Positions 2,911-26,204 of a stretch of 64,000 bases of DNA are shown here, one piece after another. The notes under the pieces were generated by a model. That model made no database searches. It worked only from the letters and a program-made list of their open reading frames with translations, and was not told where the DNA came from. The stretch is from Haliotis cracherodii (taxonomy: Eukaryota), in the NCBI RefSeq assembly GCF_022045235.1, contig NW_027266282.1:5332001-5396000 (forward strand). Direction: 5' to 3'. The position numbers and the translations under genes were made by a program. Positions within the stretch are counted from its first letter, which is position 1; each line of letters starts with the position of its first letter.

Positions 2911-3176
2911 TTTGGTTGATTGGTTTGTTGTTTAACGCCGCATTCAGCAGTATTCCCGCTACATGACGATGATCTGTAAATAACCGAGAGTGGACCAGAC
3001 AATCCAGTGATTGATATGAGCATCCATCCAGGCAATTAGGATCGATAACATGCATCAACCAAGTCGGGGAGCCTGACCACCCGATCCCGTTAGTCGCCTC
3101 TGATGACAAGCATAGTCGCCTTTTAGGGCAAACATGAGTTGCTGAAGACCTATTCTACCCCGGATCTTCACTGGTC
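2911..3176 (-). mobile_element. Short retroposon family A, full length
   Basis: 13-bp TSD ACCAGTCACATGA (2898-2910, 3177-3189). Body shared with other copies. Confidence 0.9.
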
Positions 3177-3745: not shown

Positions 3746-5270
3746 ATGCCATACCAGTACAGCGTGACGTCCTTCACCTCTCGCGAGGTGTTGGACATAC
3801 TCCACCGCCCCGACTGGTCGAGGGTGATCCGAGAACCGCCCGTCAAGCCCAGGGCGGGGGAGGTGTTTCTTTTCCACTACCAGGATGACGGCAGGAAAGG
3901 TAAAAATACAACTAGCCGTGACCGAATGGCTTTCAAACATGTCGGTGTATTTAATTAAACATTGACTTCAATAATGTTTACCTCTATGGAGGTATATAAG
4001 ATACGTATATATATGCGATAAATTGCAAAGAACAAAGATGAACGAAGCGTTGTTCGTTTCACGATAAAACAATGTTCTATCATGACGTCATTTCTGGAAC
4101 ATGCGACCGCAACTTGATGACGTAAATTGGACGGCGTTATTTTTTGGAGGGAATTAAGTGTCAGGTAAGATGTAGCTGGACAACGTAGATGAACGCAATA
4201 GCTGACGGATCACACTCAAAAGTGGGAGAGATTATGACAATCAGTAGTGGGAGAAAAGGTGCAGATAATCCACGTTAACATTGTGAGAATACCAAACTGA
4301 ACCCCACTGTACATAAAATGGACTTTTCCGACACTGCCGAGGTCGGATGGTATTCTGGGAGTCATCATCATAGTATAAATACGGATAGAAGTTTCCAAAG
4401 CTTGTGCATTTTACTGACAATTGTGAAAAGACTGTACAAAATGTTGATATCTCATATATGAAATAAACGTAAAAACAAGGTGTGCACATAGTGTATATCT
4501 GCGTATCTCAATAAACTAATGAACGCAATATATGTATATTGCTTAACGAATCAGATACAACAGAAGTACTTTTAAATTAGTTGTCAAGGCTTCTCACTTC
4601 TTGGGATTTACCTTTTCTTTGATATATGAAGCTGTGCCTTTAACGATTTTACTCTGTCTTTTATTCTCGCCTGCAACGCTTTGATCACACCAGCAATAGA
4701 CGGACATAAAAGATATAATTGAAGTACCCCAATAAAAGACAATATTTCAAACATCCTGACATTATGTAATATTAGACAGAGGGTTTGTTGTTCATGACAG
4801 TGTTGCAAGTGTTAATTTGCACATATGGCATACTTTTATGATCTATTTTCTCCTTTCCAGATGACTGGAGATGTGATCAGTATCACTTTCAACATGATGG
4901 CATACGTAAGCAGCCCAGAGCTGATCCTAAATTTTACAAAAACTTCTTCGTACTGAGAACCAGTCGAGGCAAGGACAAACGATTCAAGAAACATGCTTAC
5001 GTTTTGATGGGAGACCACAATAACCTGGTCCTGTTTCAATATCTCGGGGATGAAAGTGTTGCTGTGGATCTTCCTCATGGCAATTCAAAGAATGCCTCCA
5101 ATTTATATACACGTCTCTGTCCTTCGGTCATCCAGGCTATTAAGGACATCACCATCAAACCAAGAGACATTCTACAACAGCTCCAGGATCAGGCACAGAC
5201 GTCTGCTGTTTCTAAGGTAAAGACGCCCCGATCATTGTCCCAGATCAGCAACACCAGGTGTCGGGAGAAG
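3746..5270 (+). CDS. CG-1-like / MULE-transposase-type N-terminal DNA-binding domain (exons 1-2)
   Basis: Spliced translation PPVKPRAGEVFLF..RKD|DWRCDQYHF..FKKHAYVL..LVLFQYLGD..PHGNSK..YTRLCPS..TPRSLSQISN. This resembles the CG-1 pattern (PPSGSLFLF..RKDGHNW..FQRRCYW..IVLVHYL), judged by eye. It is followed by a basic NLS (KKVKEKRRKKKKKR). Confidence 0.6.
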
Positions 5271-8200
5271 GGGAGACCCAAGAAAGTTAAGGAAAAAAGG
5301 AGAAAGAAGAAGAAGAAGAGAGTTTGTCAAGAGTTGGAACAAGACAACCCTACTGCCGCTTCAAATAATCTCACTCAGGAAAATCTAGTGTCTTCAAACC
5401 ATGGTACTGAAGGTGACATTCCTCAGGCAACCGATGTCATGTCTCCACAATCCAAATTAAATGAACTTGCGGAACTGTGTGAAACAATTTACCAAGAAAA
5501 CATGGCAAGGCAACCTAACAGAGTGGCTAGTTGTGATGATAGGATGTGCATTGATGAGGGAAATGTTTCAGGGACTGAGAGTCAAACATGCAGCTCTATG
5601 CAGTCTGCACAGTCAAACACAGGTCATGTGTTCTCTGGCAGCACTCAACAGTCCTCTCAGGATCCAGCAACAACTTCGCTGATGGAAATTGAAAACGCTG
5701 ACTGTGTTTTACCAGCAAATAATGTAAACATTGATATGGCAAACCTTAGTAATGTGGTTGAAATGGAAGCACCACAGAATATTTGTCTGATCATTCAAGA
5801 TGGCGGGGTATCCTCATCCGGTACAGTGGAATGTGATGGTGTCACAGATTCTGTTGAAAGACAAACACTTGATAACATTGCTGAAACAGTTGTGATGGAC
5901 GTAGATTTGCAGGCCACTGGTTCTAACGGTGATACTCTTCAACCACTAAAGGTCAGTTCTGTAGCTGAAACCACACATGGCTCCATGGAGTGCTTCTTTG
6001 AAACTCAAAACACTGGGCAGCTGACTGATGTCATTGCACTGATGAAAGAAACCTTGAAGACGGAAGTGGAGTTTGAAAACAAGGAGTTAACCTCTTCATC
6101 AAGCTCAGAATCTGCATGTTCTCAAACTTTACCTGTAATATATACTGGCAAGTCAACCTCACAAGACAAGACACCCCTACCAGAAACAGCTGTTTCTCTT
6201 ATTGCACAAGTATCCAGGCTGTGGGCAAGAGACTTTAAAGGGGCACGACAGTTAATACTCAAATCAGATTTCCCAGGAAGAGACATCCTAAATAATGTTT
6301 CACTGATGGAAGCGCTGGCAGCAGTTATTGTTGGCGCCTATGAAACCAAATCTGATTGTTTAACATTTCTGGAGACCTTGAAGGTTTATCCATGTCATCT
6401 GCTTAGGACATGGATTGAAAAGAGAGCTACAGACGTTGATCCTGATGCTCGGTACCGGATTGGTAACTACACAATCTCTGGAAGTGACATCCTGAGATTA
6501 GAGGGCACATCCTGGCTGGATGATAGTGTGAGTATGATGGCCTGTGGATACAAATAATCATACAGGTACTGGATCTCATGTTTCATCATTCATGTTTGCG
6601 GGTGGTTAGAGTGACTGTTTTGATGAAATGTTTTGATGAAATGAAGATTGCAAACCTTGGAATCAGCTACCTTATCAGCTGATTTTAAGAAGTCAGTTAT
6701 CTTGTACAAATTCATTTCCTGGGGTGTCCTAGCAATACAAACAGTTATAATCCACTCGTGATTATACGAACAGCTCTCGATATTAGGTTTTAATGTTGGT
6801 AGTGTTTTGGCCGTGTTAACATTTCAAGTCCTAAGACCATTTCAATGTGAATGAGTGGGTGGGTGAGAGAGTATATTTCTGCTATGAACAACTTTTCAGT
6901 ATCAGTTTATGTTGTTCTCCATTTGTACTCATTTAATTAATTAAGTTTTTTTTCACAAAGACTTGTGTTTGGTGTTGCAGGTCATCCATGCGTATCTGTA
7001 CCTGGTCCAGAAGCAACACAGCGATGCCAGGACACGGGATGTCAGGATATTGGAATGTTTCCACTATAAACTCTGGGAAAGGCAAAACTACTCTGAGTGG
7101 TTGTATGAACAGGTATAGAGACTCAAAGATGGCTGATAAGAATATGAAATCTGAATAAGTACTAAGAAACATCAAGTATGGGAGTCCATCTTAGGCCCAG
7201 TTAAATACAACTACACTTCTATAAAGGAAAAGGTCACGAAACTGTTAAATGTCAGAGACTTCTATTATTTTAAGCCTTTATCCCTCCCATTTAACTGACA
7301 CACATGTAATGATGATGATCATTATTATTTCCTTTCCACATACACTTAAACAACTGCGTTACAGATTCAGCTCAGGAAGTGCGACCTGGTGCTGATGCCC
7401 ATCTGTATCAACAGTCACTGGGTCTTGTTGGCAGCCAATGTACTGGATAGAACAGTGTGTGTCATTAATTCTAAGCCTTCAAAGGATCTAGAAACGGAAG
7501 TTACTCAGCACTGGATGTAAGTTGACACATTCATAACAATCATGTTGGTCTTGTATTCATGGTACATTTGCAAGAAAATGAATGTGGATGATAAAAGTGA
7601 GAAGTGTCTGGTGTACCCTAGTATTTTGAACATTGTACTTGCATTCATTATAATTTCACAGGCATATTGAATGTGAGTGATAACATTTACTTTTGCTCTT
7701 CACGTAGGAAGTATATGGAGTACCGGAGTCAGGCGGTAGAGGAAGAACTCAGGTCGTGGAAGCTGGTTCATTGCCCAGTGTTCCCACAGACTGACGGCAG
7801 CAGCTGTGGAGTGTTCGTTCTCATGGTGACAAGATCATATACTGTCTAAGTCAATGGGGACCATGTACTCACTATACTCACTACTATGTTTGTCAGGACA
7901 ATATACTCCAAATTCTTTAAATGTTTAGCAATAATTTAACATATTGAACATATAAAACTAATGAAAACAATAAACTGATGCGTACACCTACAAATTCCCC
8001 AGACTGGTAGTAAAGGTAGTTTTACAATAGAAAGATGAGCAGCACCAAATCACAACAACCCTTGAACATATTGAAATAAGTCAGTTTGTTATTTCATCAC
8101 TTCATGACTTGAGACTTCAAATTAGCATTACTATATAAATTATCCACAATTTCCACAAACATTTTTAGTCATTTAACTTTTTAATGAGTATGTTATTCTT

Positions 8201-11200
8201 ATACTTATTCTTAGTGTTGTTGTTGTTATCAACAATTCAGTTGCACACAAATACAAGATGTTTAGTTTGTTCATATTGTGTGAAAAAAATGTGCATGTAC
8301 AAAATATATATGACAAAAATCTGCATGTACAAAATTTATATGACAAAAAATCTGCATGTACAAAATTTATATGACAAAAATCTGCAAGTACAAAATTTAT
8401 ATGACATTGTCAATAAGTGATATGTCAAACGAGGTTTGTTTGTTTGTTTGTTGTTTAACGCCGCACTCAGCAATATTCCAGCTATATGACAGCGGTCTGT
8501 AAATAATTGAGTCTGGACCAGATTATCCAATGATCGACATCATGAGCATCAATCCACGCAATTGGGATACAATGACATGCATCAACCAAGTCAGCGAGCC
8601 TGACCACCCGATCACATTAGTCGCCTCTTACGACAAGCATAGTCCCCTCTGACGGCAAGCATGGATTGCTGAAGACCTATTCTACCCCTGGATCCTCACA
8701 GGTCTGTCAAATGAGTGTGGGTTTTGCAACTACACATATAATAGTATGAGCAAAAAAAAATATCAATAAAATCTAATTAAACAAAAAACTGTGGTATAAA
8801 CAGATGAAGGGTGACTAGCAGACCTGGCAAAAAGACGATTGTATAACCCTGAATATCTCCCTTTATCACTGTGAAAACTGTCACTTTCTACTGCTTCTCT
8901 TCATTAATTCTGTCCTGCAAAACTAGTATCTGTCAAAGCTATAAGATATCCGTGCTGTTAAGATGATTAGCGTTGATCCGGGGCAGTAAGTTCTGTCTTC
9001 CAATGGACGTTTTTACCTTGGACATTATTCCACCTGGAAATCTCCAGGTGGAATAAATATCCTTTTACACAATGCACAATATCATTTTGAGGGGAGTATA
9101 TTATGACAAATGGTATATTATACTAAACAGGAAATAGAAATGGTTAACCCACCAGCATGGTTATTTTCCTGATTTGTGATTCTGTGAACATGTTTCAGGC
9201 TGCAGAGGCTCTTGCTGCAGGAGTGGCGCCAGGCGTGATGAGGAACTGCCATGTGGCGGGGTACCGACAGTATGTGAAACAGAGACTGATGTCAGCTGCA
9301 GAGACGACACGCGCGGTGGAGGCCCCTACTGGGGCTGCAGGTGAGAACGCAGACCCTGAGATGCTGATGGTAGTCTCCCAGGCAGAGGACCAAGCACAGA
9401 CATCGACTGATGTGTCTGGCAGGGAGCCATCTATCATTGATTGTGAAATGAATGAAGATGAAAATGTGAAATCTTCAGAGGAAATGCTATGTGTTTCATT
9501 ATCTAGAGGTCAGAATGTAGATCCTTCAGTGGGTGAACTTGATCAGGCTGCTTTAGATGCCACTGGACTTGACGAGGTAGAGAAAACTGGAGACAGGAAC
9601 GTGAGTGTTGACAGTAGCATCCAAAGTGTTGATGAAACTGAGGCAGGAGAGGAAGATATGAAGGTCATCACAGCAGACGATAATGCACAGGATCAGTCAG
9701 GGCCCATGGAATCAGGAACTTTCGTTGATGATTCAACCATGTCTTGGGAACACCCACTTGGTGAGTTATCTTTGAGTGAAGTGTTTTTAGTGAGCAAAAT
9801 AGTTTTTCAATATTTAATAGATAATATCTCAATGTTAGATCTTTTGAAATGACAATATTTTATGTGATAATGGTCAGAATGGTATAAACGAATAATGGTG
9901 TAATAAGTCGCTAACTTAATTCACTTTTACACTTGCCATCATGACAAGGACACATGGCTTACAATGGTTCATTTTCTAGGGCATTGACTGGTGATGGTTT
10001 AATGGGTTAATCACAGGTCAGGTACACTCAGAATAGCAATGATGTTACAGTTGTTATTACAGTGAAGACACAAGGTGTTTGGGAAGCAGTGAGCACTACC
10101 ATTAGTACCCTTCTTGTGTCTACTTAGAAGTATTTACTGCATTTACTGGACGTGAAGTCCTGCATCCTGTACGCATACAAATGTAAAATGGATGCAGAAA
10201 AAAATACAGAGTGTATACACTGGGATGTAGAAATTGTGTATGCATGTTGAGAAAAAGATGCGATTTCATAATTTGTTACCACTAAAGATTAATTTCCAGA
10301 CATTGTCATAAAATAAATACACGACAGTCAAATGCTTCATGATCTTGTAAAACTTGTATATGATATTACGTATTTGATAAAATAAAAAAAACCCGAGCAA
10401 ATAATAAAGCTCCACCTGTCATGAAAACATGGACTTTGTCAAGTCACTCTATGAGAAGTACATGTTCTTTGAAAAGAATATATATATATACATCCTCAAT
10501 GTATTCAAATTCTAACATTTCTCTGGAACCTCCATTTAAAAAATAAATTGCGACCCCAGCAATTAACTGCTGAGAGACCCATGAAGATTCTGGGGTAGAA
10601 CATATAGTCCAGGCCCTTAGGGAGCCATTATGAGGTATTGTGCAGATGTGTCTACAAGCACCAAATTTGGCACAGGTGTAGACCAGAACATAATTAATCC
10701 ATTTTTGGAGGGCGCCAAAGCCGACGCTCACTGGGGCGGCCATATTGGCAAAATCCAAGATGGCCGCCAATCCCTATTTGATTTTTCCTAACTTCATACC
10801 CAAAAGTCATAGGATCCTGAATTGAGGCTCTTTTTGTAGGTTTTTTACCTCAAGGCTTCCAAATGTGATCTTTGTTTTGATGTAGAAGTGCTTTTTGGCC
10901 AATTTAGTGGTTGAAAACATATTTTATTCAAATCAAATATCTTTTTTATGGTCATTTTACCTCACAGAAAAAGTTCACAAATGAGAACAACATAAGAAAT
11001 ATAAAAAAAACAACATAACAAACTGTGCTTTGTTTTGACATACAAAATATGCTTTGGACAATTTAATTGTCAGAGTATTGAGGGCAAAAACTTCCTAGTT
11101 CAGGCTTAATTTTGATGCGACACAGTAATGTTATTTTCTGGTCTGCAAATGAGATGATGCACTGCTTGGTGGTTGATGGTTTATATTATTGAACACAAAA

Positions 11201-14200
11201 AGGTCACATAAATTGTTCCTTGCATGTATTTTGTTCTTCTTCCAGAAACGCTGAGAAAGGTTGTCATGACTAATTGGACATTACTCACACATAGGTGGCC
11301 TATATGGTTACTTGTCCAGTGAATGTGTTCATATTTTTCCATCTTTGAATTTGTGTTTAGCTGAATTGGCGAGAACAGTGGTGCTGGTGAAATAATAGTA
11401 AATTGTACCTGTGATATTGCGCCAACAATGGAAAGTTTCAATTGGGAACTTTGCTGTCTTTGCCAGTCAGATAAAAGTGGACAGTTGCAAACACCAAAAG
11501 AAGGAAGGACTTTTGACTCTTGACAGAGACCTGACTGACTTTAAGAAAATCAATGCCGTTCCGTCTGGTATTACAGTCGCCTTTGATCAACTAAATGATG
11601 GATCAGGTATTGCAGCAACACTCCGATCCAATAATGCTAAGTATCACAAAACGTGTAGGAGCTACTGTAGTAGTTCTCGTGTAGTTCTCGTTCTCAAGCA
11701 CCATACGACATGGACAAGCGCATGAGACACCATTCCCCCTTTACCAAGGCCTTAAGATGCACGGAGATGCACGACTTAAGAAACAGATCGAGAATGCCCA
11801 CGAATTCGGCCTATCAGTGTCCTATAGCCGTGTTATGGAGGTGAAACAAGCTATTGCACAAGCAGTCTGCAAGCACCATTCTGAGGATGGAATTGTTCTG
11901 CCAACAGTTGGACAACTTGGATAGTCATAACAAGGGAAACTTTTCACAGGATGAGTTTCATGGCACTGCTTTGAGTGCAACGAACCATCTATCTTGGGAA
12001 AACCAAGGAGTAGAGCGAGCTCCTATTCAACTGGATACTCTGATACTCTCTGATACATCTGTGCCCCAACTTCCAGAATCATATGCTATCATACATCCAG
12101 TTAAGTTACACAACACTCCCTTGTTTGTACCTAGAAGCATCAACAGCCAAATTCGACCATGTCATGATATGGTGCAGAGGACCAAGACGAAGGACGAATC
12201 CTGGATGGCACATGTCACCACAGTGCTCCAGCAGTGCACTTGTTCAGAAGAAGACATCACATGGTCAGGGTACAACTCTCGGCTCATGAGTGAGGACTCT
12301 CTGAAGCCTCAGGCAGTGATAGGGGTTTTTCCTCTCTTTCCAGACAAAGCAGCATCTCCATCCATGATAAAACATACAATGGAACTCACCATGCAAGGTA
12401 CAGAGTTCCTGAATCCCGGTCAGATGGGTGTTCTGGGTGCAGATCAGCCTATTTATGCTATAGCAAAGCAACTACAATGGACATTTCCAGACATTTTAGG
12501 AGAAGATAAGTTGGTTCTGATGATGGGAGCATTGCATATTGAAGACAAAGTTCATCATATGATTGGAAAGTTGTTGCGTGATTCAGGTTGGACTACAGTA
12601 CTTTCTCAGGCACAGGTTCTAACATCTGGCCGTGCTGAGTCAGTTCTTAATGAGCAGCACATCAAGCGCACACGTTATGCCCACCAAGTATCTGTAATGT
12701 CTCTTCACCTCCTTAAGCACAAGGCATATTCTACTTGCTGCTTGAATGTTCATGGACCACCTGAGTCACAGGAGATGTGGGATCAACGCTCCAGAACACA
12801 AAATCCGCAGTTCAAGTTCTGGTTTACCATCATGGAGCTTGAGCTATTGATGTATCGCTTCATTCGGTCTCTACGTGAGGGAGATTTCCTTCTCTATGTC
12901 CAAGTATGTGATGAGCTCTGCCCATGGTTTCATGTGATGGACCACACAAACTATGCAAGATGGCTACCAATACATGTGCGGGATATGGTCCAGCTGTCAG
13001 AGAAACACCCGAACATACATGCTGAATTTCTCAAAGGGAACTTTGTCGTTCAAAAGTCACCACACAAGTTCAGCCTCATTGGAAAGGATCAGTCACACGA
13101 ACAATCCAATAAGAGTCTACAGGCACATGGCGTAGCAGCAGGACTCTATGAGAACCCTGAAGCACTAAGACTCTTCATGTTGATAGGTCCAGACTGCTCG
13201 AGATGTGTTGCAGAGTTTGAAGCTGTCCTAGACACACCAAAGTCTAGCACTGTTCATCACGAAGAAGCACATAGCTTGCAAGTTAAGTATAGGAAGGATG
13301 TCCTGTCATTTGTTGAGATTGTTCAGCAGCTAGGCAATCCCTTTACTAGTGGTCAAGAACTTGTAGCACTCGACACACAAGAAATTATGGAACAGGAAGT
13401 CGTTACATCTCTCTCTAGGGTTCATGAAGTTGGCAAAGACCTTCATGCACAATACGCTTCACAGACACTTGATAAGGTGACAGTGCCAGTGTCAAACACT
13501 ATCCGACGTAATAAAATCCTGACATTCGCCAATCGTCCTGTTCTGACCAAAAAAGGAAACAAAACCAGTGGTTTACAGAAGAAAAATATGACTCTGATCA
13601 CAACACTCTTCCTTTCACTGCAATCACGACCAGATGTAGATATGGAAGAGTTTTTTCGTTTTGAAAATCAAAGGGAACCACCAAGTTTGGCTGATCGTGG
13701 TTCACTTCGACTCGGCAAAAAGTCTGATATTCTGGAATGCACCAAAGCGCCTTTAGTCGAGCACTTCCAGCCAAATTAGCCACAGTTGTTGTGCTTGACA
13801 TGGCAGCTGTTGTTAACATGGTGCGGCCCACATCAGCGAAGACATTTGCTGAGTATGTTACACAGCACATTGTGCCATTCCTGGAGTCCCAGATAACCGA
13901 AACAGTTGCACTTTTAGATGCCATATGGGATAACTACCCAGAAAACAACCTCAAATCCCTCACACATCAGCGTCGTGGTACAGGTCCACGGACTAGGATT
14001 GGGAATGGCCACACACGAATCCCAAAGCATGACTGGAACAGTGGATTTCTCAAAAACGTGGATAACAAAAAGGAGTTATTCTCTTTCCTCAGTGAGGAGC
14101 TTGTCAAAAAAGATTTGGGTGGGAGACTCCTTCTCAGTACCAAATTTGAGAGTGTTCTTTCCAATGGACCATGCGATGTATCAGCTCTCCAACCCTGTAA

Positions 14201-17200
14201 CCACTCTGAAGCAGATACAAGGATATTCTTTCATCTGGCACATGCTGTAGCAGAGGGGCATCAAACAACTTATGTCCGTACTGTTGATAGTGATGTGGTA
14301 GTTCTTGCCGTACGCTTCTTCTCTACACTTGGTCTCTCAGAGCTGTGGGTGTGTTTTGGTAGCGGGAACAAAATTCGCGATATTCCCATCCATGATATCT
14401 GTTCTCATCTTGGGCCTTCAAGGTCTCTGGCATTGCCGCTTTTCCATTCCATCACAGGGTGCGACACGACATCACAGCTCCTTGGGTGTGGCAAGAAAAC
14501 TGCCTGGGCATCTTGGCAAAACACACCAGGACTCACTGAAACACTGGTGACACTAACCAATCAACCAGAACTGTTCAGTCTTGAGTCTCTTCACATGCAG
14601 AGGCTGGAACGATTTGTGGTTATCATGTATAGTAAGGGGTGTGGTTTGGCTAAAGTCAATGAAGCCAGACATCATCTTTTTACAACTGGTAAAAGAACGC
14701 TTGAGAATATACCACCCACTCAGGCAGCCTTGTTTGAACACATAAAAAGGGCACTTCTTCAGGCAAGCTTTTACTGGAATCAAGCAGCCTCAGTTCACCA
14801 GGAAATCCCGGACTTTGGTGAATGGGGGTGGCAAAAGGAAGACGGTGGTATCTGGTCACCATACTGGACACCTCTCGAGGATGCCAGTAAAGCATGTTCC
14901 TTCCTTTTGCATTGCGGTTGTGAAAGGTCTTGCACTGGAAACTGTAAATGCAGTAGAGCTGGAGTCCGCTGCACGGGGTTATGCAAATGTGAAGGTGGAT
15001 GTGTGAACAATCACGATACCTCGATCAATTAGATTAAACCTTGCCACAGTGATGTTTAACTTACACTAGAAATATTTAGGCTTGCTAGTATTTTTAAATT
15101 TCTCATGTTGTTCTCAGTTGTGAACTTTTTCTGTGAGGTAAAATGACCATAAAAAATATATTTCGTTTGAATAAAATATGTTTTCAACCACTAAATTGGC
15201 CAAAACGCACTTCTACATCAAAACAAAGATCACATTTGAAAGCCTTGAGGTCTAAAACCTGTGAACAAGCCTTAATACATGATCCTATGACTCTTGGTTT
15301 TGAAGTTAGGACAAAATCAAATAGGGACTGGCGGCCATCTTGGATTTTGCCAACATGGCCGCCCCAGTGAGCGTCGGCTTTGGCGCCCTCCAAAAATGGA
15401 TTTAGTATGTTCTGGTCTACATCTATGCCATATTTGGTGCTTGTAGACACATCTGCACAATATTCCCCTAAGGTCCTGGACTAATAGGTCTTCAGCAACC
15501 CATGCTTGCCGTAAAAGGTGACTATGCTTGTCGTAAAAGGCGACTAACGGGATCAGGTGGTCAGGCTCGCTGACTTGGTTGATGCATGTCATCGATCCAA
15601 ATTGCGTGGATCGATGCTCATGATATTAATCACTGGATTGTCTGGTCCAGACTCGATTATTTACAGACCGCTGTCATATAGCTGAAATATTGCTGAGTGC
15701 GGCGTTAAACAACAAACCAACCAACCAACCAACCAACCAACTGCTGAGAGTTGGACCCCAAATTTAATATTTAACCCCAAACATTCCTGGTAGTGTCATG
15801 GTATAAGAAGATAAATGTCAAGTTTCACAATTGTGTTTTGCAGATCATGTTCCACTACAGTCACAGTGTGAGGCATTATTTAAAAATCAGAAGTCAAACT
15901 TTACAGCTCTAACACTACTTTGTTTGGAGAAAGGAAAACTGATGTTGTCAGACTTGGATGGTCCAGCTGAAGACTGTTCTCTACAGATGCACATGAAGTG
16001 GGCATGTCAGTTGACCAGGACAGATGAAATGAGTGGGGATCAGTTCAGACAGTGCTTGCATAGCCTGAGTGGATCATTACTCAGATCACAGGGTTCAGCA
16101 GTACAGCTCAGGCATGAAGAAACACAATCTCATATAGAAGAAATCCTCATGACTACTGCTGTTGAATACATCCATGATGTAGACCCCCTGTTTATCTACA
16201 GACATGTGAAGGTGCAGGGTAGCAGGGATTCTTTGAGCAATGGTAAAGGACTCACCCTTTACCTAGATAAGAACAGACAGAAGGATTTGGGGCTACGCTT
16301 TGTAGGGGAGATAGAAAAACACAACTTTGCTTTTACTTTGACTCATCAAGCCTGTGGAAAGCATACTTTTGCTTCAACGTTGATTAGAATGTGTACTGCC
16401 ACAGGAAATGTGAAAGAACTTTTTAAGATATGTGATAAAATTCATGGTGGTAACTTCCTAAGCTGGATGTGTTTTGGAAAAAATGCTGAATTATACAAAG
16501 TGCTGTCGAGCTACATACCAGAGGAGGAGAGGAAAGATTGTGTCATACCTTGTTGTGTGAGTGGCAATTCAGAAATACTGCAACTGCTCCTAGAAGACAT
16601 GGAACTGGATGGACTGCTGTCATCGACACCCAGGTTACAAGTAGTCCATGGTATTGACAGTTGTCAGGGGCAACCAGAGTCTCTCCCATCTCACCATCTT
16701 CCGCCACTGCATCTCGCCTCCTACTACGGACACACAGATATTGTTCAGCTGCTCCTCCAGCATGGATGTGATGTGAATCTCCAGCTGCAACCTCAGGGTG
16801 ATGAGGCAGGACAAGTTGCTGCGCGATCCACACCAGCTGCCGTAGCAGCACAGAGAGGACATACAGGAGTACTGAAGTGTCTGATGGAAAGCAATGCTGA
16901 TCTCAATCTTGTCGACTGCAAATTAAAGACTCCGCTACACTTAGCTTGTGAAGCAGGCCATGGAGGCATTGTTTTGATACTAGCAAATGTGTGCAAAATC
17001 TCTTCCAGGAATAAAGATGGAAACACACCTGTCCACCTAGCCTGCCAAGAGGGAAGGGCAGATGTTGTGGATATTCTACTTAATAGAAATGCAGATCTCA
17101 CAATGCTAAATTTTGACAACTGTTCGCCAATAGATGTTGTATGTAGCAATGGTTATTCCAGTGTTTTACAGTTGTTGCTTGATAGAATATCCTATCCATT

Positions 17201-18627
17201 GCCGTGTGATGGTTACAAAACTCCTTTACATACAGCATGCAAGAATGGATACCCAGAGATTGTGAACATACTGCTGCAGCATGATGCTGGTAGATCAGTT
17301 TGTGCTGACAGAAACACACATTTTGAAATGGCTGTGAGAAATAACTGTACAAACATTGTCAGTGCCTTGTTCGGGTCAGGAACAAACAATTATATCAATA
17401 CGCAATTATTTAATTCAGCCTGTATGGAGGGTCATACAGATATTGTCAAACTGCTGATAGAGAAAGGGGCTGATGTATCTGCTGCTGCTGCTGCTGCTGG
17501 TTACACACCTCTGTCATGTGCCTGTAGGGAGGGTCATACTGACATTGTCAAACTGCTGATAGAGAAAGGGGCTGATGTGTCTGCTGCTGGTGGTGGTGAC
17601 ACACCTCTGTCATGGGCCTGTAAGAATAGTCATACTGATATTGTCAAACTGCTGATAGAGAAAGGGGCTGATGTATCTGCTGCTGCTGCTGCTGCTGGTT
17701 ACACACCTCTGTCATGTGCCTGTAGGGAGGGTCATACTGACATTGTCAAACTGCTGATAGAGAAAGGGGCTGATGTGTCTGCTGCTGGTGGTGGTGGTGA
17801 CACACCTCTGTCATGTGCCTGTAGGGAGGGTCATACTGACATTATCAAACTGCTGATAGAGAAAGGAGCTGATGTGTCTGCTGCTGGTGGTGGTGGTGAC
17901 ACACCTCTGTCATGGGCCTGTAGCTGGGGTAATACTGACATTGTCAAACTGCTGATAGAGAAAGGAGCTGATGTATCTGCTGCCTTTAATTATGATGATG
18001 ATGATGATGATGATGATGATGGTTACACACCTCTGTCATGGGCCTGTAAAAATGGTCATACTGACGTTGTCAAACTGCTGATAGAGAAAGGGGCTGATGT
18101 GTCTGCTGGTGGTGGTTGTGACACACCTCTGTCATGTGCCTGTAGGGAGGGTCATACTGATATTGTCAAACTGCTGATAGAGAAAGGGGCTGATGTGTCT
18201 GCTGCTGGTGGTGGTGGTGGTGGTTACACACCTCTGTATTGGGCCAGTGGCTGGGGTAATACTGACATTGTCAAACTACTGATAGAGAAAGGAGCTGATG
18301 TATCTGCTGCCTTTAATTATGATGATGATGGTGACACACCTCTGTCATTGGCCTGTAGCTTGGGTAATACTGACATTGTCAAACTGCTGATAGAGAAAGG
18401 AGCTGATGTGTCTGCTGCTGCTGCTGGTGGTTACACACCTCTGTCAGGGGCCTGTAGGGAGGGTCATACTGATATTGTCAAACTGCTGATAGAGAAAGGA
18501 GCTGATGTGTCTGCTGCTGGTGGTGGTGGTGACACACCTCTGTCATGGGCCTGTAGCTGGGGTAATACTGACATTGTCAAACTGCTGATAGAGAAAGGAG
18601 CTGATGTATCTGCTGCCTTTAATTATT

Positions 18628-18666
<39 letters not shown>

Positions 18667-21600
18667 GTTACACACCTCTGTCATGGGCCTGTAAAAATGG
18701 TCATACTGACGTTGTCAAACTGCTGATAGAGAAAGGGGCTGATGTGTCTGCTGGTGGTGGTTGTGACACACCTCTGTCATGTGCCTGTAGGGAGGGTCAT
18801 ACTGATATTGTCAAACTGCTGATAGAGAAAGGGGCTGATGTGTCTGCTGCTGGTGGTGGTGGTGGTTACACACCTCTGTATTGGGCCAGTGGCTGGGGTA
18901 ATACTGACATTGTCAAACTACTGATAGAGAAAGGAGCTGATGTATCTGCTGCCTTTAATTATGATGATGATGGTGACACACCTCTGTCATTGGCCTGTAG
19001 CTTGGGTAATACTGACATTGTCAAACTGCTGATAGAGAAAGGAGCTGATGTGTCTGCTGCTGCTGCTGGTGGTTACACACCTCTGTCATGGGCCTGTAGG
19101 GAGGGTAATACTGACATTGTCAAACTGCTGATAGAGAAAGGAGCTGATGTGTCTGCTGCTGCTGCTGGTGGTTACACACCTCTGCCATGGGCCTGTAGGG
19201 AGGGTCATACTGACATTGTCAAACTGCTGATAGAGAAAGGTTCTGATGTATCTGCTGCTGCTGCTGGTGGTTACACACCTCTGTCATGTGCCTGTAGGGA
19301 GGGTCATACTGATATTGTCAAACTGCTGATAGAGAAAGGAGCTGATGTGTCTGCTGCTGGTGGTGGTGGTGGTTACACACCTCTGTCATTGGCCTGTAGC
19401 TTGGGTAATACTGACATTGTCAAACTGCTGATAGAGAAAGGAGCTGATGTATCTGCTGCCTTTAATTATGATAATGATGATGATGATGATGATAATGATG
19501 ATGGTTACACACCTCTGTCATGGGCCTGTAAAAATGGTCATACTGACATTGTCAAACTGCTGATAGAGAAAGGGGCTGATGTGTCTGCTGCTGGTGGTGG
19601 TGGTGACACACCTCTGTCATGTGCCTGTAGGGAGGGTCATACTGACATTATCAAACTGCTGATAGAGAAAGGAGCTGATGTGTCTGCTGCTGGTGGTGGT
19701 GGTGACACACCTCTGTCATGGGCCTGTAGGGAGGGTCATACTGATATTGTCAAACTGCTGATAGAGAAAGGTTCTGATGTGTCTGCTGCTGCTGCTGGTG
19801 GTTACACACCTCTGTCATGTGCCTGTAGGGAGGGTCATACTGATATTGTCAAACTGCTGATAGAGAAAGGAGCTGATGTATCTGCTGCTGCTGATGGTTA
19901 CGCACCTCTGTTATGGGCCTGTGAAAATGGACATATTGATTTTGTCAAACTTATTAAAGATAGGTTAAACATCTCTGTAGATTGTTTTCACTCTATTTTA
20001 GAGAAAGTGAGTACCGAAGGTAAGAGAGAAATTGCATCTGTGGTGCTAAAAGAAGTGTTGCCTAGACTCATAGCTCCTTTTTCAAACTATTGCCACACAT
20101 TAATTGAGTGGTGTTCCTCTTCTGAACATCTAGATATAGTGAAAGACATATGTGATAAATCTGATGTGGAAACTTTCCCAGGCATGCTAATGTCGTCTCT
20201 ACTGGAGAAAGCTGTTGCCAATGGCGATGCATATGGTGTTGAGTTGCTCAAAGAATGCATGACAGGAGTGGTCTCAAATGATCGCCTGTTGAGTCTGATG
20301 TCGAAAGCTATAGAAAATCGTCACATTGCAGTGTTTCAGATATTGCATGGCATCCCACATGTTCATGATTCCTGTGATAACTTAGTAAAAAAAGCATGTC
20401 ATTATGGATTGGTACAAGTCTGTAATGTCCTGCTAAGATGTGGCTGTACTCACTCTGGAACATGTCTGACTGAAGCACTCAAAGTGAAAAATGTTGTTCT
20501 TGTAGAGTTGCTTCTTAGCCACGGTGTAGATGTGAATGCACGTGATGATGATGGCAACACATCACTGCACTTGGCATGTGAAGTAGGGGAGTGGAGCTTA
20601 GTTGAGACATTTATTGCCAAAGGTATTGATGTATCACAAACCAACAAACAATTGGAAACACCTTTGTTTATTGCATGTCGTTATGGATATGTCAACATTG
20701 CCAAACTGCTGTTAAGCCATGGTGCGGATATAACAAAACAAGATATCAATGGAAACACAGTTCTACACTCTTTGTCTATGCCTTGTCATGAGGTATTACT
20801 TCAGCTGTCTCTACATTATATTTGGATGAAAACAGACAACGGATATCATGATCAAGAACAAGAACACTTTCTTAATTGTAAGTGTGTTCGTGATTTTCTT
20901 CATTATCGAAATAATAATGGAGAAACACCTCTTCATGTTGCATGTAGAGAAAAACGTACAGGAGTTTTGAAATCACTACTTCAGTACAAGGCTTCAGTAT
21001 TTGTGACTGATAATGATGGACACACACCTGTCTATCATGCAATGAAAGTGAAAACATTTTTCCGAGTTCTTTGTACAGTGACACATGACATAAATGGGAT
21101 GGATTCAGATGGAAATACTATTCTGCATATGGCATGTATGAAGGGTGATGTGGAAAGTGTAGATATACTTTGTGGAAGAGGAGCAAGTGTGCTGGCTTGC
21201 AACAAGAATCAGGAGTGTGCACTTCATAAATCAGCAGAGAATGGAAATGAAGACATCATGAACATTCTTTTGGCACAGGAAGCTGATGTAAATATGACTG
21301 ACATAGACAAGCAGACACCGCTCCATATTGCATGTGCTGAGGGTCATTTGAAAATAGTTGAACTCTTGGTTAAAAGTAAAGTGGATGTAAATGTGCCTGA
21401 TAAACATTTACTAGTTCCCCTGCATCTTGCATGTAGAGATGGACAAAGAAACATTGCTGACGCTTTGATAAAGTCATCAGCGGACATTGCACCACGTTCT
21501 GAGAAGTGTGACACACCACTTTCATATGCATGTGAAGGAGGGCATATTGGCTGTGTCGCACTCCTGTTGGAGATTGGAGCTTGTGCCAATGTAGCAGGAT

Positions 21601-24600
21601 ACCGAGGCAATACTCCATTACATAAAGCATGTGTTGGGGGTCACAAAAATGTTGTGAGATTATTGCTTTCTTGTGGAGCTGATCCAATGAAAGTAAATAA
21701 CAATGGGAAGCTTCCATTACACCATGCCGTTCTATGGGGCAACCTTGCTATTGTCAACGAGTTACTACACAAAACCAAACAATTTCTTGATAAAACCGAT
21801 AACATTGTGTCATTGCTTGAACGGGCATGTTCAAGGGGTCATGCAGACATAGTGAAGAGGTTGATAGATTTTATCCCAGACAATTCTATGTCATCTCCTT
21901 CCATGACTTCTCTTGTCACAACTGTCATCAGTGTAAAGCACTCTGAACTTCTACCTGTACTTGCAGATAATGGGTTGAATATCAAATTGAAAGATGAATT
22001 TGGAAGGAATGCATTGCACATATTATGTGAAATGGAAGATTGTGAAATGGACACATTAGAGACAGTTTTAGATTTAGGATTTGATTTATCAGAGACAACA
22101 GAACAAGGAGGAACAATGCTTCATGTTTTAAGCAAAATAGGGAATATTGAACTCGTTAATTACTTGATTGGTAAAGGAATACATGTCCAGGCTAAGGACA
22201 CAGCGGGAGATACAGCTCTCCATGCAGCATGTGCACATGGACACTTTCAAATAGCCCAGGTGCTGATCAAGAAGGGACTTAGTATCAATGAAAAGAACAT
22301 GAGAGCAATGAGTCCACTTGATCTTGCTATAGTTAATAAGCACTATGGAGTGACATGCTTGTATGACCTCTGGTGTGCAATGACGAAAAGTCGTCCAAGA
22401 ATAAGCATGACATCTCTTCATCATATTTGCCGGGACAACAAAATACAGTTACTTTCAAATTCTGAGGTTATATTTGCTGAAAAAGACCGTGATGGAAATT
22501 CTGCTCTTCATATTGCCTGCATTGAAGGATCAGAAGAGATAGTTCAGCTACTGATAATAGCTGGAGCCTGGTTGCTTGTGGTGGATACTCGGGGAGATGC
22601 ACCAGTGCATGTGGCTTGCCGTGGGTCATCGCCTTGTCTTAAAGCTATGATGGATGCAATTCTGAACAAAGACGATTTAGCCCAGGTTTTATCGCTGCGT
22701 GACAAAAATGGAAATGTTCCACTTCACATTGTAACATTCGAACAGAATCTACAAAAAGTGTGTATTCTTTTGGATAAAGATGTTGATGTTGAAATAGTCA
22801 ACAGCTTTGATCAAACTGCTCTGCACATTGCATGCTATAGTGGAAATGCCGACATAGTTGCACAACTCTTAGGAGCTGGAGCTAGTATTTTAGCTGTTGA
22901 TAAAGGTGGTAATACCCCTCTTCATATTGTATGCAAGGAGGGCAACCTACCATTGTTAATGCTCATAAACAACTCAGATGCAGCGATCACTGCAAAGAAT
23001 TATGAAGGAAGAACGCCTCTCCATGAAGCAGTCAACCATGAACACTATGACATGACCTATTACATGATGACAGCATACTGTCACTTTCCTACCATGGACC
23101 TGTCTGTGCTGCGTCTTCAGCAGTTTATCAAACAGGTTGGCAGTGAAGACTTTATAAGACTGATCATGGCTGAAAAGATTGATGTTGATCAATATGGTAA
23201 TACTCCCCTACACTACGCAGCTGAAACCGGGAGCTTAGATTTTGTAAATACCTTGATCAGAAGAGGGTACAACTGTGATTCCAGAAATAGGCAAGAAAGG
23301 ACACCATTGTTTAATGCATGTTCAAGTGGTAGTACAAACATTGCAAGACTGATTTTGCAAAGAGGATCACCTTCAAGTGTGCGTGATTCTAACAATATGA
23401 CACCTTTGCATACAACCAGTGAGAGGGGACACGTGGATGTCGTGAAACTCCTGCTAGAATATGACCATAATCTCCTGGCTGAAACCAACGAGGGACAAAC
23501 AGCACTTCATTTGTCATGCCTGGCAGGACAAAAAGATGTCACTGAAGTTTTGTTGAAGGCTGGCTCAGATATGAATGCATTAGATAATGGTTTAGAAACA
23601 CCTTTGCATTTGGCGGCTAGATCAGGTGCAGGTGATGTCATGGTTCTCCAGGCCAAGTGGGGAGCAAGGGACACACAGTGCAATGTTCATGGTAATACTG
23701 CTCTTCATATAGCATGTGGTGAGGGACATGCTGATGCCGTCAAGGCACTTCTCAACATGGGGAGTGATATCCTATCAACAAACAAACTGGAAAAGACCCC
23801 ACTTATGCTGGCCTGTGAACGACAACATGGGTCTATTTTGGAGTTATTGCTTCACAGATCATGGGTGCAAATACAATTTCAGTGTTTACAGGACAAGAAC
23901 CAGGGTGACTTGCGGAAGAAAACATATGTCAGCAATCTAAATCACTGTCTTCGTGTGGCTTGCAAGTACAACTACCTCAACACAGTGAAGGTATTACTCA
24001 AGTATGATGTTAATATTAATCATGGAACCAGCGAGTCTGATACAAGCAACATAACTAGAGACATGCCAGAGGGCAGTTGCACAAGTCATACTGACAGAGA
24101 CAAGACAGAGGGCAGTTGCACAAGTCATACTGACAGAGACAAGACAGAGGGCAGTTGCACAAGTCATACTGACAGAGGCCAGATGGAGACAGAGAGTAGG
24201 GGTCAGCTACAGACTCCTTTACACATCTCCTGCTATGAAGGACATGCCGAGTGTGTTGCTCTTCTGATACAAGCCGGGGCTCTGCTGGAAGCTAGAACTG
24301 GCAGTGGAGACACCCCCCTGCATGTGGCATGTGAACAAGGAAAAGAAGGTCCTGTGGAGTTGTTGATAGCGAATGGGGCCTCGCCATCACCTGTGAATGC
24401 CAATAACAGTACACCGCTACACTATGCATGTCAAGGAGGTCATGACGGTATAGTGTGGAGACTGTTGGAGGCAGGAGCAGATCCTGACATCAGATATGTC
24501 CATGGGAAATCACCGCTGGAGGTGTGTAGCAGCCAAGGGGTGAAAGACGTCATCCTTAAAAGGTAAGTAGACAGGAGTGTGTCCGAGTGATCCAACAACT

Positions 24601-26204
24601 CTTTGTATAACAGATACATAACCTTGAATCTTGAATACGCAAATCTTGAATTCTTCACAATATGATATGTCCCACAAAGAAATAGCGCAGGGATATTAGT
24701 TTGACAATTATTTGTGGAAACTGCTATAGGATGCATAAACTATTAAGGGAAACACGGCATCACAAATTAATATTTTAAATATGTTTAGGATGCATTTGTT
24801 TGGACACAGTCAATCTCATTAAGATCAGACCTTAATTCTCGCTGACGCTGAACAAAGATCTGAAGACATCCCATAAGGGGTTGTGTCAGAACGACCTTTC
24901 ATCCGACAAATCAGAGCGTCGCTTACCAGATTATGAAAGTGTCAGTCGGAATGTGATTTCTACCTCAAAATGCATAACAAGTGGTATTCTGAACAATACT
25001 TACGGGTTTAACGACTGAATCCATACAATCTAGATCATCTATTAGCCATTCCAGAATGTTCTTTTGTTCAGGTTTCAAATTTGTAATTGAGAATTTGTCA
25101 AAATATGTTTCGAAACTTAGTCGCCAATTTGAAATTGGTGCCGTAAAGAACAAGAAAGCTCCCTGCTGATTGGTCCATCCATTGGTCGGTTAAAGTTCGC
25201 CCAATGTCGGTCTGACGTGACCCGTGATGGGATGTCCTCAGATCTTTGTTTAGCGGTAGCGAGAACAAAGATCTGATTTTAATGAGATTGGGACATAGTA
25301 GACTGTACCCTCAAATATGACACATTTTCTCGGAAACAGCTAAGGACAAAAGGAAGACATTTTTTCTACATTATCATGTGATACTTTCAGCGAGTTTGCA
25401 AACCAATATGGAAAAAAAATATTTTACAGAGTTATGGGACTTTGATCTTTTGACATGGTGCACATTATCACCATGGGGACATGGAAAAAACTTTCGTACC
25501 AGGGTCCTACTCAGTACCCACCCGACCCGGGTACCCACAGGACTACCAGAACCCTTGGTTAGTCACGTGATATATTGTTTAATGACAAAAATTATCTTGA
25601 ACTCTATGGTTACACTAAAGTCAATAATGTTCGCATTTCTATCTGGCAATGCACCCATTCCTTCTGATTTTTCATATGGTTGAATAAAGATATAACATAA
25701 TTCAACTTTAGTGTATGAGTGACCAGATTGTTTCATACAAGTAGTTTTGCCAGGGCTGTGCTAAAAATGTTCCCAACCAGACATTTTGAGACATCTCCTG
25801 TGACCTACAGTGGGTACCCGGGTAGTAAATGAAAGACTTAAAGAATCAAATACCTTACTGCCCCGTGGGGATGCTGGGACAGAGGCGACATAATGGATCG
25901 GGTGGTCAGACTCGGTGACTTGGTTGATGGCGTGTCATCGCAATGGTGTGGATTGTAGCTCATAATATCAATCCCTGGATCGTCTTGTCAAGATACTGTG
26001 ATCGCCTTGGAGGTTGCCACTGTATAACTGATATACTGCTCAGCATTGCATTAAACAAGAAGCAATGAAACAAACTATACATTGCCATCAATCGTTGTAA
26101 GTTCCACTTATTTGTTGTTATTTGTCCACAGGTGTGGAAGAAAAAGAAGACAGGAAAGCTCCCAGGAAGCTGAGGCAACCCCACACAAGTTACCAAGAAA
26201 ATAA
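3746..26204 (+). CDS. Predicted ~3,858-aa protein: CG-1-like DNA-binding domain + NLS + Ulp1/SENP-family (C48) protease + very long ankyrin-repeat region
   Basis: Manual splice model: join(3746..3899,4861..6527,6981..7112,7365..7516,7708..7825,9199..9760,15844..24562,26132..26204). All introns are GT..AG with matching phases (1,0,0,2,0,1,2). Total 11,577 nt is divisible by 3 and I found no internal stop. ATG 3746 follows an in-frame TGA at 3731. The joining of exon 6 to exon 7, and the use of exon 8, are inferred without transcript data. Confidence 0.7.
6460..9300 (+). CDS. Ulp1/SENP-like cysteine protease domain (exons 2-6)
   Basis: Motifs across exons: WLDDS|VIHAYL, MPICINSHWVLL (catalytic His), PQTDGSSCGVFVLM (oxyanion Gln and catalytic Cys), and the C-terminal helix AAEALA..YRQYVKQRL. 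Confidence 0.85.
8284..8405. repeat. ~29-30-bp tandem repeat x4 (intronic)
   Basis: aaaaatctgcatgtacaaaatttatatgac units. Confidence 0.85.
8434..8704 (-). mobile_element. Short retroposon family A, full length
   Basis: TSD TGTCAAA(C/T)GAG (8423-8433, 8705-8715); (AAAC)n tail. Confidence 0.9.
10605..15483 (+). mobile_element. AcademX-type DNA transposon, decayed
   Basis: Imperfect TIRs of about 390 bp (TAGTCCAGG.. at 10605; ..CCTGGACTA ending at 15483) and a 3-bp TSD ATA (10602-10604, 15484-15486). Internal frameshifted ORFs encode a DDE-type transposase, an XPG-like nuclease and a Cys-rich tail. TAG termini, short TSD and XPG domain are characteristic of AcademX. Confidence 0.85.
11428..15032 (+). 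pseudogene. Frameshifted Academ transposase / XPG-like nuclease / CXC polyprotein
   Basis: Fragments: MESFNWELCCLCQ (ATG 11428); NAKYHKTC (ORF 11411-11725); DNLD..ADQPIYAIAK..GALHIE..DQSHEQSNK (ORF 11854-13779); then a frameshift near 13745 to HSEADTR..VDSDV..GCDTTS and CGCERSCTGNCKCSRAGVRCTGLCKC (ORF 13737-15032). Confidence 0.85.
15844..24562 (+). CDS. 8.7-kb single exon encoding dozens of ankyrin repeats
   Basis: ORF 15831-24566 (2911 aa) with recurring TPLHxACxxGHxxIVxLLL motifs. Acceptor ttttgcag| ends at 15843. Strong donor AG|gtaagt at 24562/24563; read-through stops at 24566. Confidence 0.95.
17417..19950 (+). repeat. Coding tandem array of 24 near-identical ankyrin repeats (~96-140 bp) with (GCT)n/(GGT)n/(GAT)n loops
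   Basis: 24 units of ACxxGxTDIVKLLIEKGADVSA-loop-TPL counted in the translation. Units 5-10 are re-duplicated as units 11-16. Confidence 0.95.
24068..24178 (+). repeat. In-frame 39-bp tandem repeat x3 (EGSCTSHTDRDKT)
   Basis: Three copies of agagggcagttgcacaagtcatactgacagag inside an ankyrin loop. Confidence 0.9.
24811..25290. mobile_element. Non-autonomous TIR element, probably AcademH-derived, with RecQ-like helicase remnant
   Basis: TIRs of about 65 bp (CAATCTCATT..AATGAGATTG) and a 9-bp TSD GGACA(C/T)AGT. The - strand remnant [23 protein letters not shown] resembles an SF2/RecQ Q-motif region. A partial second copy lies at 55835-56160. Confidence 0.7.

Follow-up and report, generated by a model that had tools for sequence, protein, structure and literature searches.

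The subject of this article is a giant gene of the black abalone, Haliotis cracherodii, which appears to unite the remains of a transposase with part of an immune-type receptor. It occupies positions 3746-26204 of a 64,000-nucleotide stretch of DNA (hereafter the window; C19:5,332,001-5,396,000 of the 1.18-Gb H. cracherodii assembly, contig NW_027266282.1); a run of N is present in the window at 58109-58315. This is a real, expressed host gene: its structure, transcription and splicing, the homology of its modules, the loss of both the DDE transposase core and the P-loop NTPase, and its place in a family of paralogues are all matters of observation. Where, then, would such a protein have come from, and what could it do? 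Taken as a whole, the account that we favor, and hold to be reasonably probable, is that of an expressed gene family of Haliotis in which the two ends of a Mutator-like element (MULE) transposase were fused to a truncated nSTAND3 receptor, with a product that would act as a chromatin-tethered (de)conjugation module.

Structure and transcription of the gene

Exons were searched one by one, and the RefSeq orthologue P0001 (red abalone, H. rufescens, LOC124124203 isoform X3; 3,808 amino acids, aa) served as a stand-in for the full-length protein. Eight exons (E1-E8, Table 1) follow one another in phase, their lengths adding up to 154+1667+132+152+118+562+8719+73 = 11,577 nt, that is 3,858 codons and a stop. 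All seven introns have GT..AG borders, and the phases fit throughout. When P0001 is aligned by tblastn, the matches are exactly these eight blocks in the same order, including the joins HPL/DHVPLQ (E6/E7) and KR/CGRKRR (E7/E8). A stop codon stands just upstream of the initial ATG, and the first exon is 92% identical to residues 1-51 of P0001; E6 is 81% identical, with a 25-residue indel. The longest open frame of the ankyrin exon, E7, spans 2,911 codons (15831-24566), with shorter open frames upstream. An earlier note on this DNA, written from the sequence alone, had proposed eight exons forming one in-phase frame of about 3,858 residues, with basic stretches resembling nuclear localization signals (NLS) at both ends. 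The frame is borne out by the GT-AG borders, the phases, the tblastn alignment and the RNA contigs described below, and both basic stretches are present, KKVKEKRRKKKKKR at 5280-5321 and CGRKRRQESSQEAEATPHKLPRK in E8.

Transcript evidence comes from contigs of four runs (X1-X4, from two studies, with assemblies of transcriptome size), which represent cDNA since the introns are absent from them. Splicing at the GT donor at 3900 is seen in contigs from four runs, and spliced contigs join 3899/4861, 6527/6981, 7112/7365, 7516/7708 and 7825/9199, i.e., junctions 1-5. At the sixth junction, contigs depart from the genome exactly at the 9760 donor and carry an overhang that does not match the intron (1,604 nt in X1, 791 nt in X2 and 215 nt in X3). 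If resumed at 15844, the X1 overhang would end at 17447; the first recurring 31-mer of E7, where a k-mer assembler must break, starts at 17439. E6 ends in phase 1, and the acceptor at 15844 takes phase 1. Judged from the overhang lengths, the phase match and the orthologue model, the join of 9760 to 15844 is very likely, and the predicted product places ...CACCCACTTG directly before ATCATGTTCC. As for the RNA check of this junction suggested in the same note, it confirmed the use of the donor and the overhangs in X1-X3, while the join itself has indirect support. P0181, a Logan sequence of 516 aa in the orthologue cluster, was also considered as cDNA evidence and rejected: it reads through the exon-2 donor, and is hence genomic.

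An in-frame TAA (24564-24566) comes right after the exon-7 donor, so retention of intron 7 would leave the protein short of its 23-aa basic tail and of nothing else. Whether the intron is kept could act as a simple on-off control of the NLS-like stretch at the C-terminus.

Table 1. Exons, domains and nested element of the black abalone gene (positions in the window).
Feature	Position	Strand	Support
E1, start ATG and N-terminal third of CG-1-type domain (helix, first strand)	3746..3899	+	Pfam CG-1 E 0.051 on E1 alone
E2, remainder of CG-1-type domain, linker, pre-Ulp1 segment, first Ulp1 motif	4861..6527	+	both ends spliced in RNA contigs
E2, PHGNSK	5073-5090	+
E2, CPSVI	5118-5132	+
E2, basic NLS-like run	5280-5321	+
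E2, pre-Ulp1 segment	~6171-6527	+
E2, WLDDS	6513-6527	+
E3, Ulp1/C48 N-terminal helices	6981..7112	+	tblastn to P0001 residues 607-652; joints in contigs
E4, Ulp1/C48 core: catalytic His codon 7416-7418 (SHWV), Asn at Asp position 7467-7469 (VINS)	7365..7516	+	Pfam C48
E5, Ulp1/C48 core: oxyanion Gln 7787-7789, catalytic Cys 7805-7807 (QTDGSSCG)	7708..7825	+	Pfam C48 E 0.009; joints in contigs
E6, last Ulp1 helices and acidic disordered linker	9199..9760	+	donor 9760 then GTGAGT
E7, first 270 aa, pre-ankyrin domain	15844..16655	+	alignment A2, model
E7, remainder, ~2,640 aa of ankyrin repeats	16656..24562	+	Pfam ankyrin families E = 0, 42-49 stretches; donor 24562 then GTAAGT
E8, 23-aa basic tail CGRKRRQESSQEAEATPHKLPRK and stop TAA 26202-26204	26132..26204	+	AG acceptor, phase 2; 95% identity to P0001 C-terminus
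DNA transposon, 4.83 kb, in intron 6 (9761-15843)	10636..15462	+	TIRs (terminal inverted repeats), genome copies

Probable origin of the N-terminal module from a transposase

The comparisons support an N-terminal module derived from a Mutator-like transposase, of which only the two ends would have been kept and the DDE/SWIM core lost. The Pfam profile CG-1 (PF03859) covers positions 8-114 of its 116 in the orthologue P0001, at 16.9 bits against a cutoff of 23.5, and exceeds that cutoff in the paralogues P0003 (25.4 bits), P0004 (25.0) and P0011 (30.9). Pfam returned no match on the whole of E2, on E6 or on the pre-ankyrin part. P0001 and P0002 carry, in addition, the precomputed Pfam labels PF28018 and PF28177. 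Relatives of E2 measuring 300-1,000 aa (P0005-P0008, one of them from the sponge Dysidea avara) carry CG-1 (29.7 and 32.6 bits, above the cutoff) followed by weak MULE, Transposase_mut or SWIM matches. The similarity of E2 to transposases extends beyond CG-1 into a stretch that is absent from CAMTA, PHGNSK..Y.RTCPSVI..PRN..Q..N. A profile built from exon 2 of eight paralogues (A1) and searched against 1.84 billion representatives gave 654 matches: the full-range ones come solely from Haliotis, and most of the others are transposase-head fragments from mantis shrimp, annelid, sponge and marine assemblies.

The most complete relative, P0136 (1,034 aa), carries in one protein CG-1, a MULE DDE domain (33.2 bits, above the cutoff of 27.6), a SWIM-like CxC..H, a basic run, Peptidase_C48 (49.4 bits) and a PHD finger. 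It belongs to a 15-member cluster of near-identical sequences, as expected of a repeat. The abalone protein is 35% identical to it over 184 aa at the N-terminus (E 2e-25) and 23% identical across the protease (E 0.004). P0129 pairs a ZSWIM1/3-type MULE core with the conserved pre-Ulp1 segment behind it (E 1.5e-13). Among the abalone paralogues, whose overall identity is only 22-48%, the CG-1 and pre-Ulp1 blocks have stayed conserved. The interval between CG-1 and Ulp1 contains the basic run and disordered, low-complexity sequence rich in Ser, Asp and Glu, unalignable even among paralogues. No MULE or Transposase_mut match (PF10551/PF00872) was found in the window exons or in P0001-P0004, nor was any TIG or IQ family among the Pfam matches of P0001, P0003 and the window exons at E <= 0.01. 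Two claims of the earlier note thus stand: that the gene contains a domesticated MULE fragment, MULE transposases being the closest relatives of its CG-1 part including PHGNSK..CPSVI, and that CG-1-like, Ulp1 and ankyrin parts are combined without DDE or IQ.

Low-copy CG-1-type MULE genes also reside in the black abalone genome (C4:35131924-35134581, C10:9630111-9631740, C12:81363222-81364025 and C10:9446239-9447561), and are possible relatives of the donor element. In the copy at C4:35.13 Mb, an open frame of 644 aa (MULE at 31 bits, SWIM-like) adjoins one of 260 aa with HW...DS...NGSDC and a weak C48/YopJ-like match.

A structural model of the head domain was built from 27 sequences, with the transposase fragment P0079 as first row and the abalone exons included. 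It comprises one helix and five strands, with a predicted local distance difference test score (pLDDT) of 86 and a predicted template-modeling score (pTM) of 0.81. Its neighbors in VIA-align are SSR4 (Z 9.4), GCM on DNA (Z 8.1), WOPR (Z 7.4), WRKY33 (Z 7.3) and NAC (Z 7.1), and Foldseek returned the same set at E 0.004-0.1, with nothing below E 0.001 for either this model or that of the pre-ankyrin domain. A search of PDB sequences with the sponge transposase P0007 yielded no CG-1 structure. It is the coherence of the neighbor list, rather than any single score, that carries the argument for a predicted CG-1-type, WRKY/GCM-like fold. The CAMTA CG-1 model has the same structural neighbors, and CG-1 has been assigned to the WRKY/GCM1 clan (Holm, 2022; PMC9252788); where that paper takes up the clan, its connection to MULEs is treated as long known (Babu et al., 2006, cited in PMC9252788). 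The check proposed earlier for a profile or structure match of the N-terminus has in this way given transposase homology by profile and a WRKY/GCM-like fold by model.

The Ulp1/C48 protease domain

Peptidase_C48 (PF02902) is recognized in E4 alone (30.5 bits, E 4e-7, cutoff 20.7) and, across residues 603-768, in P0001 (63.2 bits). The motifs WLxD, HW and QxxGxxCG appear in the correct order. Once catalytic residues were mapped through the alignment of P0136 with SENP1, the His, the oxyanion Gln and the nucleophile Cys proved invariant in six out of six paralogue proteins examined. The full His-Asp-Cys triad with its Gln is incomplete in the window gene, which has Asn at the Asp position, as do P0001, P0003, P0004, P0009 and P0011; Asp is kept only in the paralogue on C80 (P0010) and in the transposase P0136. 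Since the catalytic Asp is replaced by Asn, protease activity is uncertain, and the enzyme may be weak or dead. The retention of three of the four catalytic residues, at 22-48% identity between paralogues, nevertheless argues for a function of the domain.

The ankyrin exon and its probable receptor ancestry

The giant exon E7 opens with a pre-ankyrin domain, the first 270 residues of the exon, which recurs at 31 loci of the genome. At the five of these that were checked (on C13, C23, C9, C11 and C4), the nSTAND3 domain PF20720 (E 1e-19 to 6e-28) lies immediately upstream in the same open frame, and ankyrin repeats come after the pre-ankyrin-type domain. This P-loop NTPase is absent, according to Pfam, from the window exons and from P0001-P0004. 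The window contains no remnant of it: in tblastn, five NTPase segments reached no better than E 0.07 there. Alignment A2 sets the domain of the window gene beside its counterparts at 14 further loci of this genome. A tree of the domain (15 rows) has a 95/97 branch that splits seven fusion-linked copies from eight nSTAND3-linked ones. Modeled at a pLDDT of 88.4, the domain falls into two parts: residues 1-107 are similar to the winged helix found after Cdc6/ORC ATPases (Z 7.2-7.6), and residues 143-262 have an ankyrin-like structure. The sequences support descent of the ankyrin exon from an nSTAND3 NLR-like receptor gene whose NTPase would have been lost, and the term "ankyrin sensor" used in the earlier note is a reasonable one given that descent.

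Within the repeats, 24 near-identical ankyrin units extend from 17439 to ~19950, with a 33-aa periodicity. Loops of inserted poly-Asp, poly-Gly or poly-Ala make their actual spacings vary from 32 to 46 residues. The red abalone gene has 20-21 such units across its six isoforms, vs. the 24 of the black abalone: the copy number of the array changes between sister species.

A gene family of Haliotis

Genome searches with exon 2, exon 4 and the pre-ankyrin domain revealed at least 13 loci with CG-1 and Ulp1 exons, and in 11 of them a CG-1 exon, a Ulp1 exon and a giant ankyrin frame follow in the same order and on the same strand. Besides the window on C19, these loci are found at C4:19.78 Mb, C80:13.97 Mb, C5:2.89, 3.25, 9.99, 12.90 and 12.97 Mb, and C5:31.69, 31.72, 31.76, 31.79 and 31.86 Mb. 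For C5:3.25, C5:9.99 and C5:31.86 Mb, a pre-ankyrin match is not among the matches listed. Paralogue identity is 22-53%, and every copy inspected has the intron before DDWRC and the one after WLDDS in identical positions. The tree of the pre-ankyrin domain would fit one fusion event whose product was then duplicated. The chimera is accordingly no one-off. The five members at C5:31.69-31.86 Mb form a tandem run in which the linkers are short (exon 2 measures 355-357 aa) and the ankyrin frames span 1,041-1,886 aa; there, the Ulp1 exons at 31.72, 31.76 and 31.79 Mb score identically, suggesting recent duplication or gene conversion.

The full architecture appears confined to Haliotis, having been found only there. 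The A1 search returned no protein outside Haliotis combining CG-1 and the pre-Ulp1 segment without DDE, and a word search that took the opening 270 residues of E7 as query yielded four proteins, each from Haliotis, P0001 being the best match. The same joins are modeled in P0001 (six isoforms), P0003, P0004, P0009, P0010 and P0011, and in H. rubra and H. asinina models; no black abalone RefSeq protein was found for the window locus in the length ranges searched. Identity to the red abalone orthologue is 91-98% per module, linker included, the exceptions being E6 (81%, with its indel) and the post-array ankyrin part (84%). Since it is so uniform, even in the disordered linker, this identity does not separate constrained from free modules.

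The earlier note had not recognized the architecture as a described one. That agrees with the literature searched, in which no paper was found describing Haliotis ankyrin and Ulp1 proteins of this family, but not with the databases: RefSeq already has models of it, labeled "uncharacterized protein", from four species of Haliotis. A literature match to "Cg-1" in root-knot nematodes was set aside as an unrelated gene name.

Proposed mechanism and alternative explanations

How might these parts work together? In the account that we favor, the two ends of a MULE transposase gene, a CG-1-type head and a Ulp1/SENP-type tail, would have been joined upstream of a truncated nSTAND3 receptor gene. In place of the DDE/SWIM core between the ends there would now be a disordered linker with a basic run in it, and the receptor gene would have been reduced to its post-NTPase winged-helix/helical domain and ankyrin array. 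The two basic stretches would bring the protein into the nucleus, where the CG-1-type domain, whose original target was presumably the transposon's own ends, could serve as a tether to DNA. The ankyrin solenoid would bind protein partners, through a near-identical repeat array that varies in copy number between species, and the Ulp1 domain would cleave, or at least bind, SUMO or another ubiquitin-like modifier on these partners or on nearby chromatin proteins. As the NTPase is absent, ATP-driven NLR switching would be impossible; the protein would instead be a constitutive tether coupling target binding to a chromatin-bound (de)conjugation module. A nuclear, DNA-bound deSUMOylase or sensor is what we infer from these domains.

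Several points weigh against this account. For the orthologue of this gene, Pfam CG-1 stays below its cutoff, and the fold-match Z scores (7-9) are in the tool's middling range. The triad Asp is Asn in the window gene and in five of the six paralogue proteins. Similarity between the Ulp1 domain and P0136 is weak, so a separate capture of the protease is possible. The pre-ankyrin tree is unrooted, and has 15 sequences and two long branches. The E6/E7 join has indirect support, and the one between E7 and E8 is drawn from the orthologue model, GT-AG borders and phase. Finally, the function and nuclear site of the protein are predicted from sequence and models.

The rival to be taken most seriously, although it seems to us rather unlikely, keeps the same architecture and origin and holds that Ulp1 is a pseudo-protease, retained for SUMO/ubiquitin-like binding or docking within a chromatin-tethered ankyrin scaffold. 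The Asn found in the window gene and in P0001, P0003, P0004, P0009 and P0011 speaks for it. However, a His, Gln and Cys that remain invariant at 22-48% identity are hard to explain without catalysis, papain-type cysteine proteases themselves use His-Asn, and the Asp is kept in P0010. It is also conceivable, by analogy, that the gene is an NLR-type receptor of immunity or genome defense whose CG-1 and Ulp1 parts form an integrated bait or effector, comparable to the WRKY domain in the plant NLR RRS1, and monitor MULEs or pathogen factors, namely those attacking DNA-binding or SUMO-pathway proteins. The nSTAND3 NLR-like descent of the ankyrin part, the tandem cluster at C5:31.69-31.86 Mb and the varying copy number of the repeat array fit this, and the RRS1 WRKY/PopP2 complex (5w3x) is among the WRKY matches of the fold search; but the NTPase switch that defines NLR signaling is absent and the link is one of analogy alone, which makes the proposal quite improbable. 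Could two neighboring genes have been misjoined, a CG-1/Ulp1 gene ending near 9850 and an ankyrin gene starting near 15831? A transposon does lie in the 6-kb gap, intron retention would meet an in-frame stop at 9850, and the contigs were followed letter by letter only up to 9760. Against this, three runs leave the genome exactly at the 9760 GT donor and run on for 215-1,604 nt, the X1 extension ends within 9 nt of the expected assembler break, phase 1 is found on both sides, at least 11 paralogous loci have the same order and strand, and the intron measures only ~1.25 kb without its transposon. We consider a misjoining very improbable.

It is more improbable again that the unit is a mobile element or a transposon-borne accessory gene rather than a host gene. 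Both N-terminal domains are indeed of transposase type and paralogues are many, yet the DDE core is missing, and no TIRs flank the 22-kb unit: within positions 1-30000, the inverted repeats are only those of the intronic transposon and of the repeats resembling short interspersed nuclear elements (SINEs). The seven conserved spliceosomal introns common to paralogues, the red abalone orthologue at 91-98% per module and a paralogue identity of 22-53%, which fits old duplications and not recent copies, also speak against mobility. The chance that the gene is a divergent CAMTA-type transcription factor with an inserted Ulp1 is close to negligible. CG-1 and ankyrin do co-occur in CAMTA, and paralogues pass the Pfam CG-1 cutoff. 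However, TIG/IPT and IQ are lacking, CG-1 continues into PHGNSK..CPSVI..PRN with 35% identity to a MULE transposase, and the homology of the ankyrin exon is with nSTAND3 receptors and not with CAMTA, which has 2-3 repeats. The likeness to CAMTA in combining CG-1 with ankyrin amounts to a coincidence of names, the CG-1 being of transposase type and the ankyrin of nSTAND3 origin.

Relation to known systems and significance

The nearest relatives are RefSeq models with the same exon joins and domain order: the orthologue LOC124124203 (isoforms X1-X6, 3,734-3,841 aa) and LOC124128376 in H. rufescens, XP_071095704, XP_071097342, XP_071090384 and XP_071097256 in H. cracherodii itself, and others in H. 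rubra and H. asinina. These are automatic predictions, named "uncharacterized protein", from which the black abalone gene differs by its 24 vs. 20-21 units and by the intron-6 transposon.

Mutator elements that carry Ulp1 domains are already known from hydra, lancelet and plants (PMC2836005). The Ulp1-bearing MULE/MuDR elements, compared here as a group (P0136, the plant KAONASHI type, and the MuDR elements of hydra and lancelet), share with the abalone gene a CG-1-type head of WRKY/GCM class with PHGNSK..CPSVI and a C-terminal C48 after the same helical segment. Unlike them, the abalone gene has no DDE/RNase H-like core, SWIM, PHD or TIRs, and it possesses seven introns and 2,900 extra residues of another gene family. 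Domesticated MULE genes, such as FHY3/FAR1 and MUSTANG in plants and the ZSWIM type in animals, keep the transposase DNA-binding domain for regulation. They also retain an inactive core and the SWIM finger, whereas the abalone gene drops both, retains the protease and is fused to receptor-type repeats. With the nSTAND3-ankyrin receptors of abalone it shares the post-NTPase winged-helix/helical domain, a long ankyrin array in one giant exon and clustered families; it departs from them in lacking the P-loop NTPase and in having transposase-derived domains in the N-terminal place. Like CAMTA, it has a predicted N-terminal fold of the CG-1 family, a nearby basic NLS-like run and downstream ankyrin, but its CG-1 is of the transposase subtype and its ankyrin part, of other origin, is ~30 times longer. 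Finally, it resembles Ulp1/SENP (SENP1 2ckg/6nnq, Ulp1 1euv) in a C48 score above cutoff and in motif order, and differs in its Asn for the catalytic Asp and in that the domain lies inside a 3,858-aa protein.

The gene would thus offer a clear animal case of a Mutator-type transposase dismantled and reused, its DNA-binding head and Ulp1 tail fused to the sensor half of a receptor of immune type, with a fusion product multiplied to at least 13 genes in abalones. CG-1, known mainly from CAMTA, would be the DNA-binding head of a widespread MULE family of marine invertebrates; this extends the link between WRKY/GCM and Mutator, and bears on the origin of the CAMTA DNA-binding domain. Given an active protease whose targets are selected by the ankyrin arrays, the family would provide lineage-specific, chromatin-bound SUMO control or genome defense, in a mollusc of commercial and conservation relevance. 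A bolder idea, which we rate as unlikely, is that the family represents a new class of nuclear guard, derived from NLRs but without an NTPase: a domesticated transposase head, recognizing MULE ends or similar DNA, and a SUMO-type protease would be directed against invading or mobile genetic elements by an ankyrin array that changes fast. If true, this would be the animal counterpart of plant NLRs with integrated WRKY, or a control of transposons by means of a transposon's own parts.

Nested transposon, repeats and other CG-1 proteins

The length of intron 6 (6,083 nt) is due to the nested DNA transposon. The TIRs of this element, ~370 bp long (10636-11007 and 15091-15462), are 94-95% complementary. 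It has two open reading frames, 11854-13779 (641 aa) and 13737-15032 (431 aa), both without a Pfam match; a Cys-rich CxC cluster closes the second. The genome contains over 100 copies or fragments of the element, among them an open copy that is 96% identical (C12:44.146 Mb).

Outside the abalones, the CG-1-type head is common to a widespread MULE transposase family of marine invertebrates (P0136, P0005-P0008 and several hundred A1 matches), and no paper linking CG-1 to MULE elements or transposons was found in the literature searched. Two to five tandem CG-1 domains occur in P0014 (ELT95607.1, from Capitella teleta; Pfam CG-1 3.8e-40, 5 stretches), P0016, P0017 and P0018, an arrangement that, to our knowledge, is unfamiliar from CAMTA biology.

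SINE-like repeat copies are located at 2912-3154, 8433-8681, 15483-15730 (opposite strand) and 25880-25929. The one in intron 5 reaches a summed depth of >170,000 in the RNA-run contigs, with many chimeric joints; the element is therefore exceedingly common in transcripts or assemblies.

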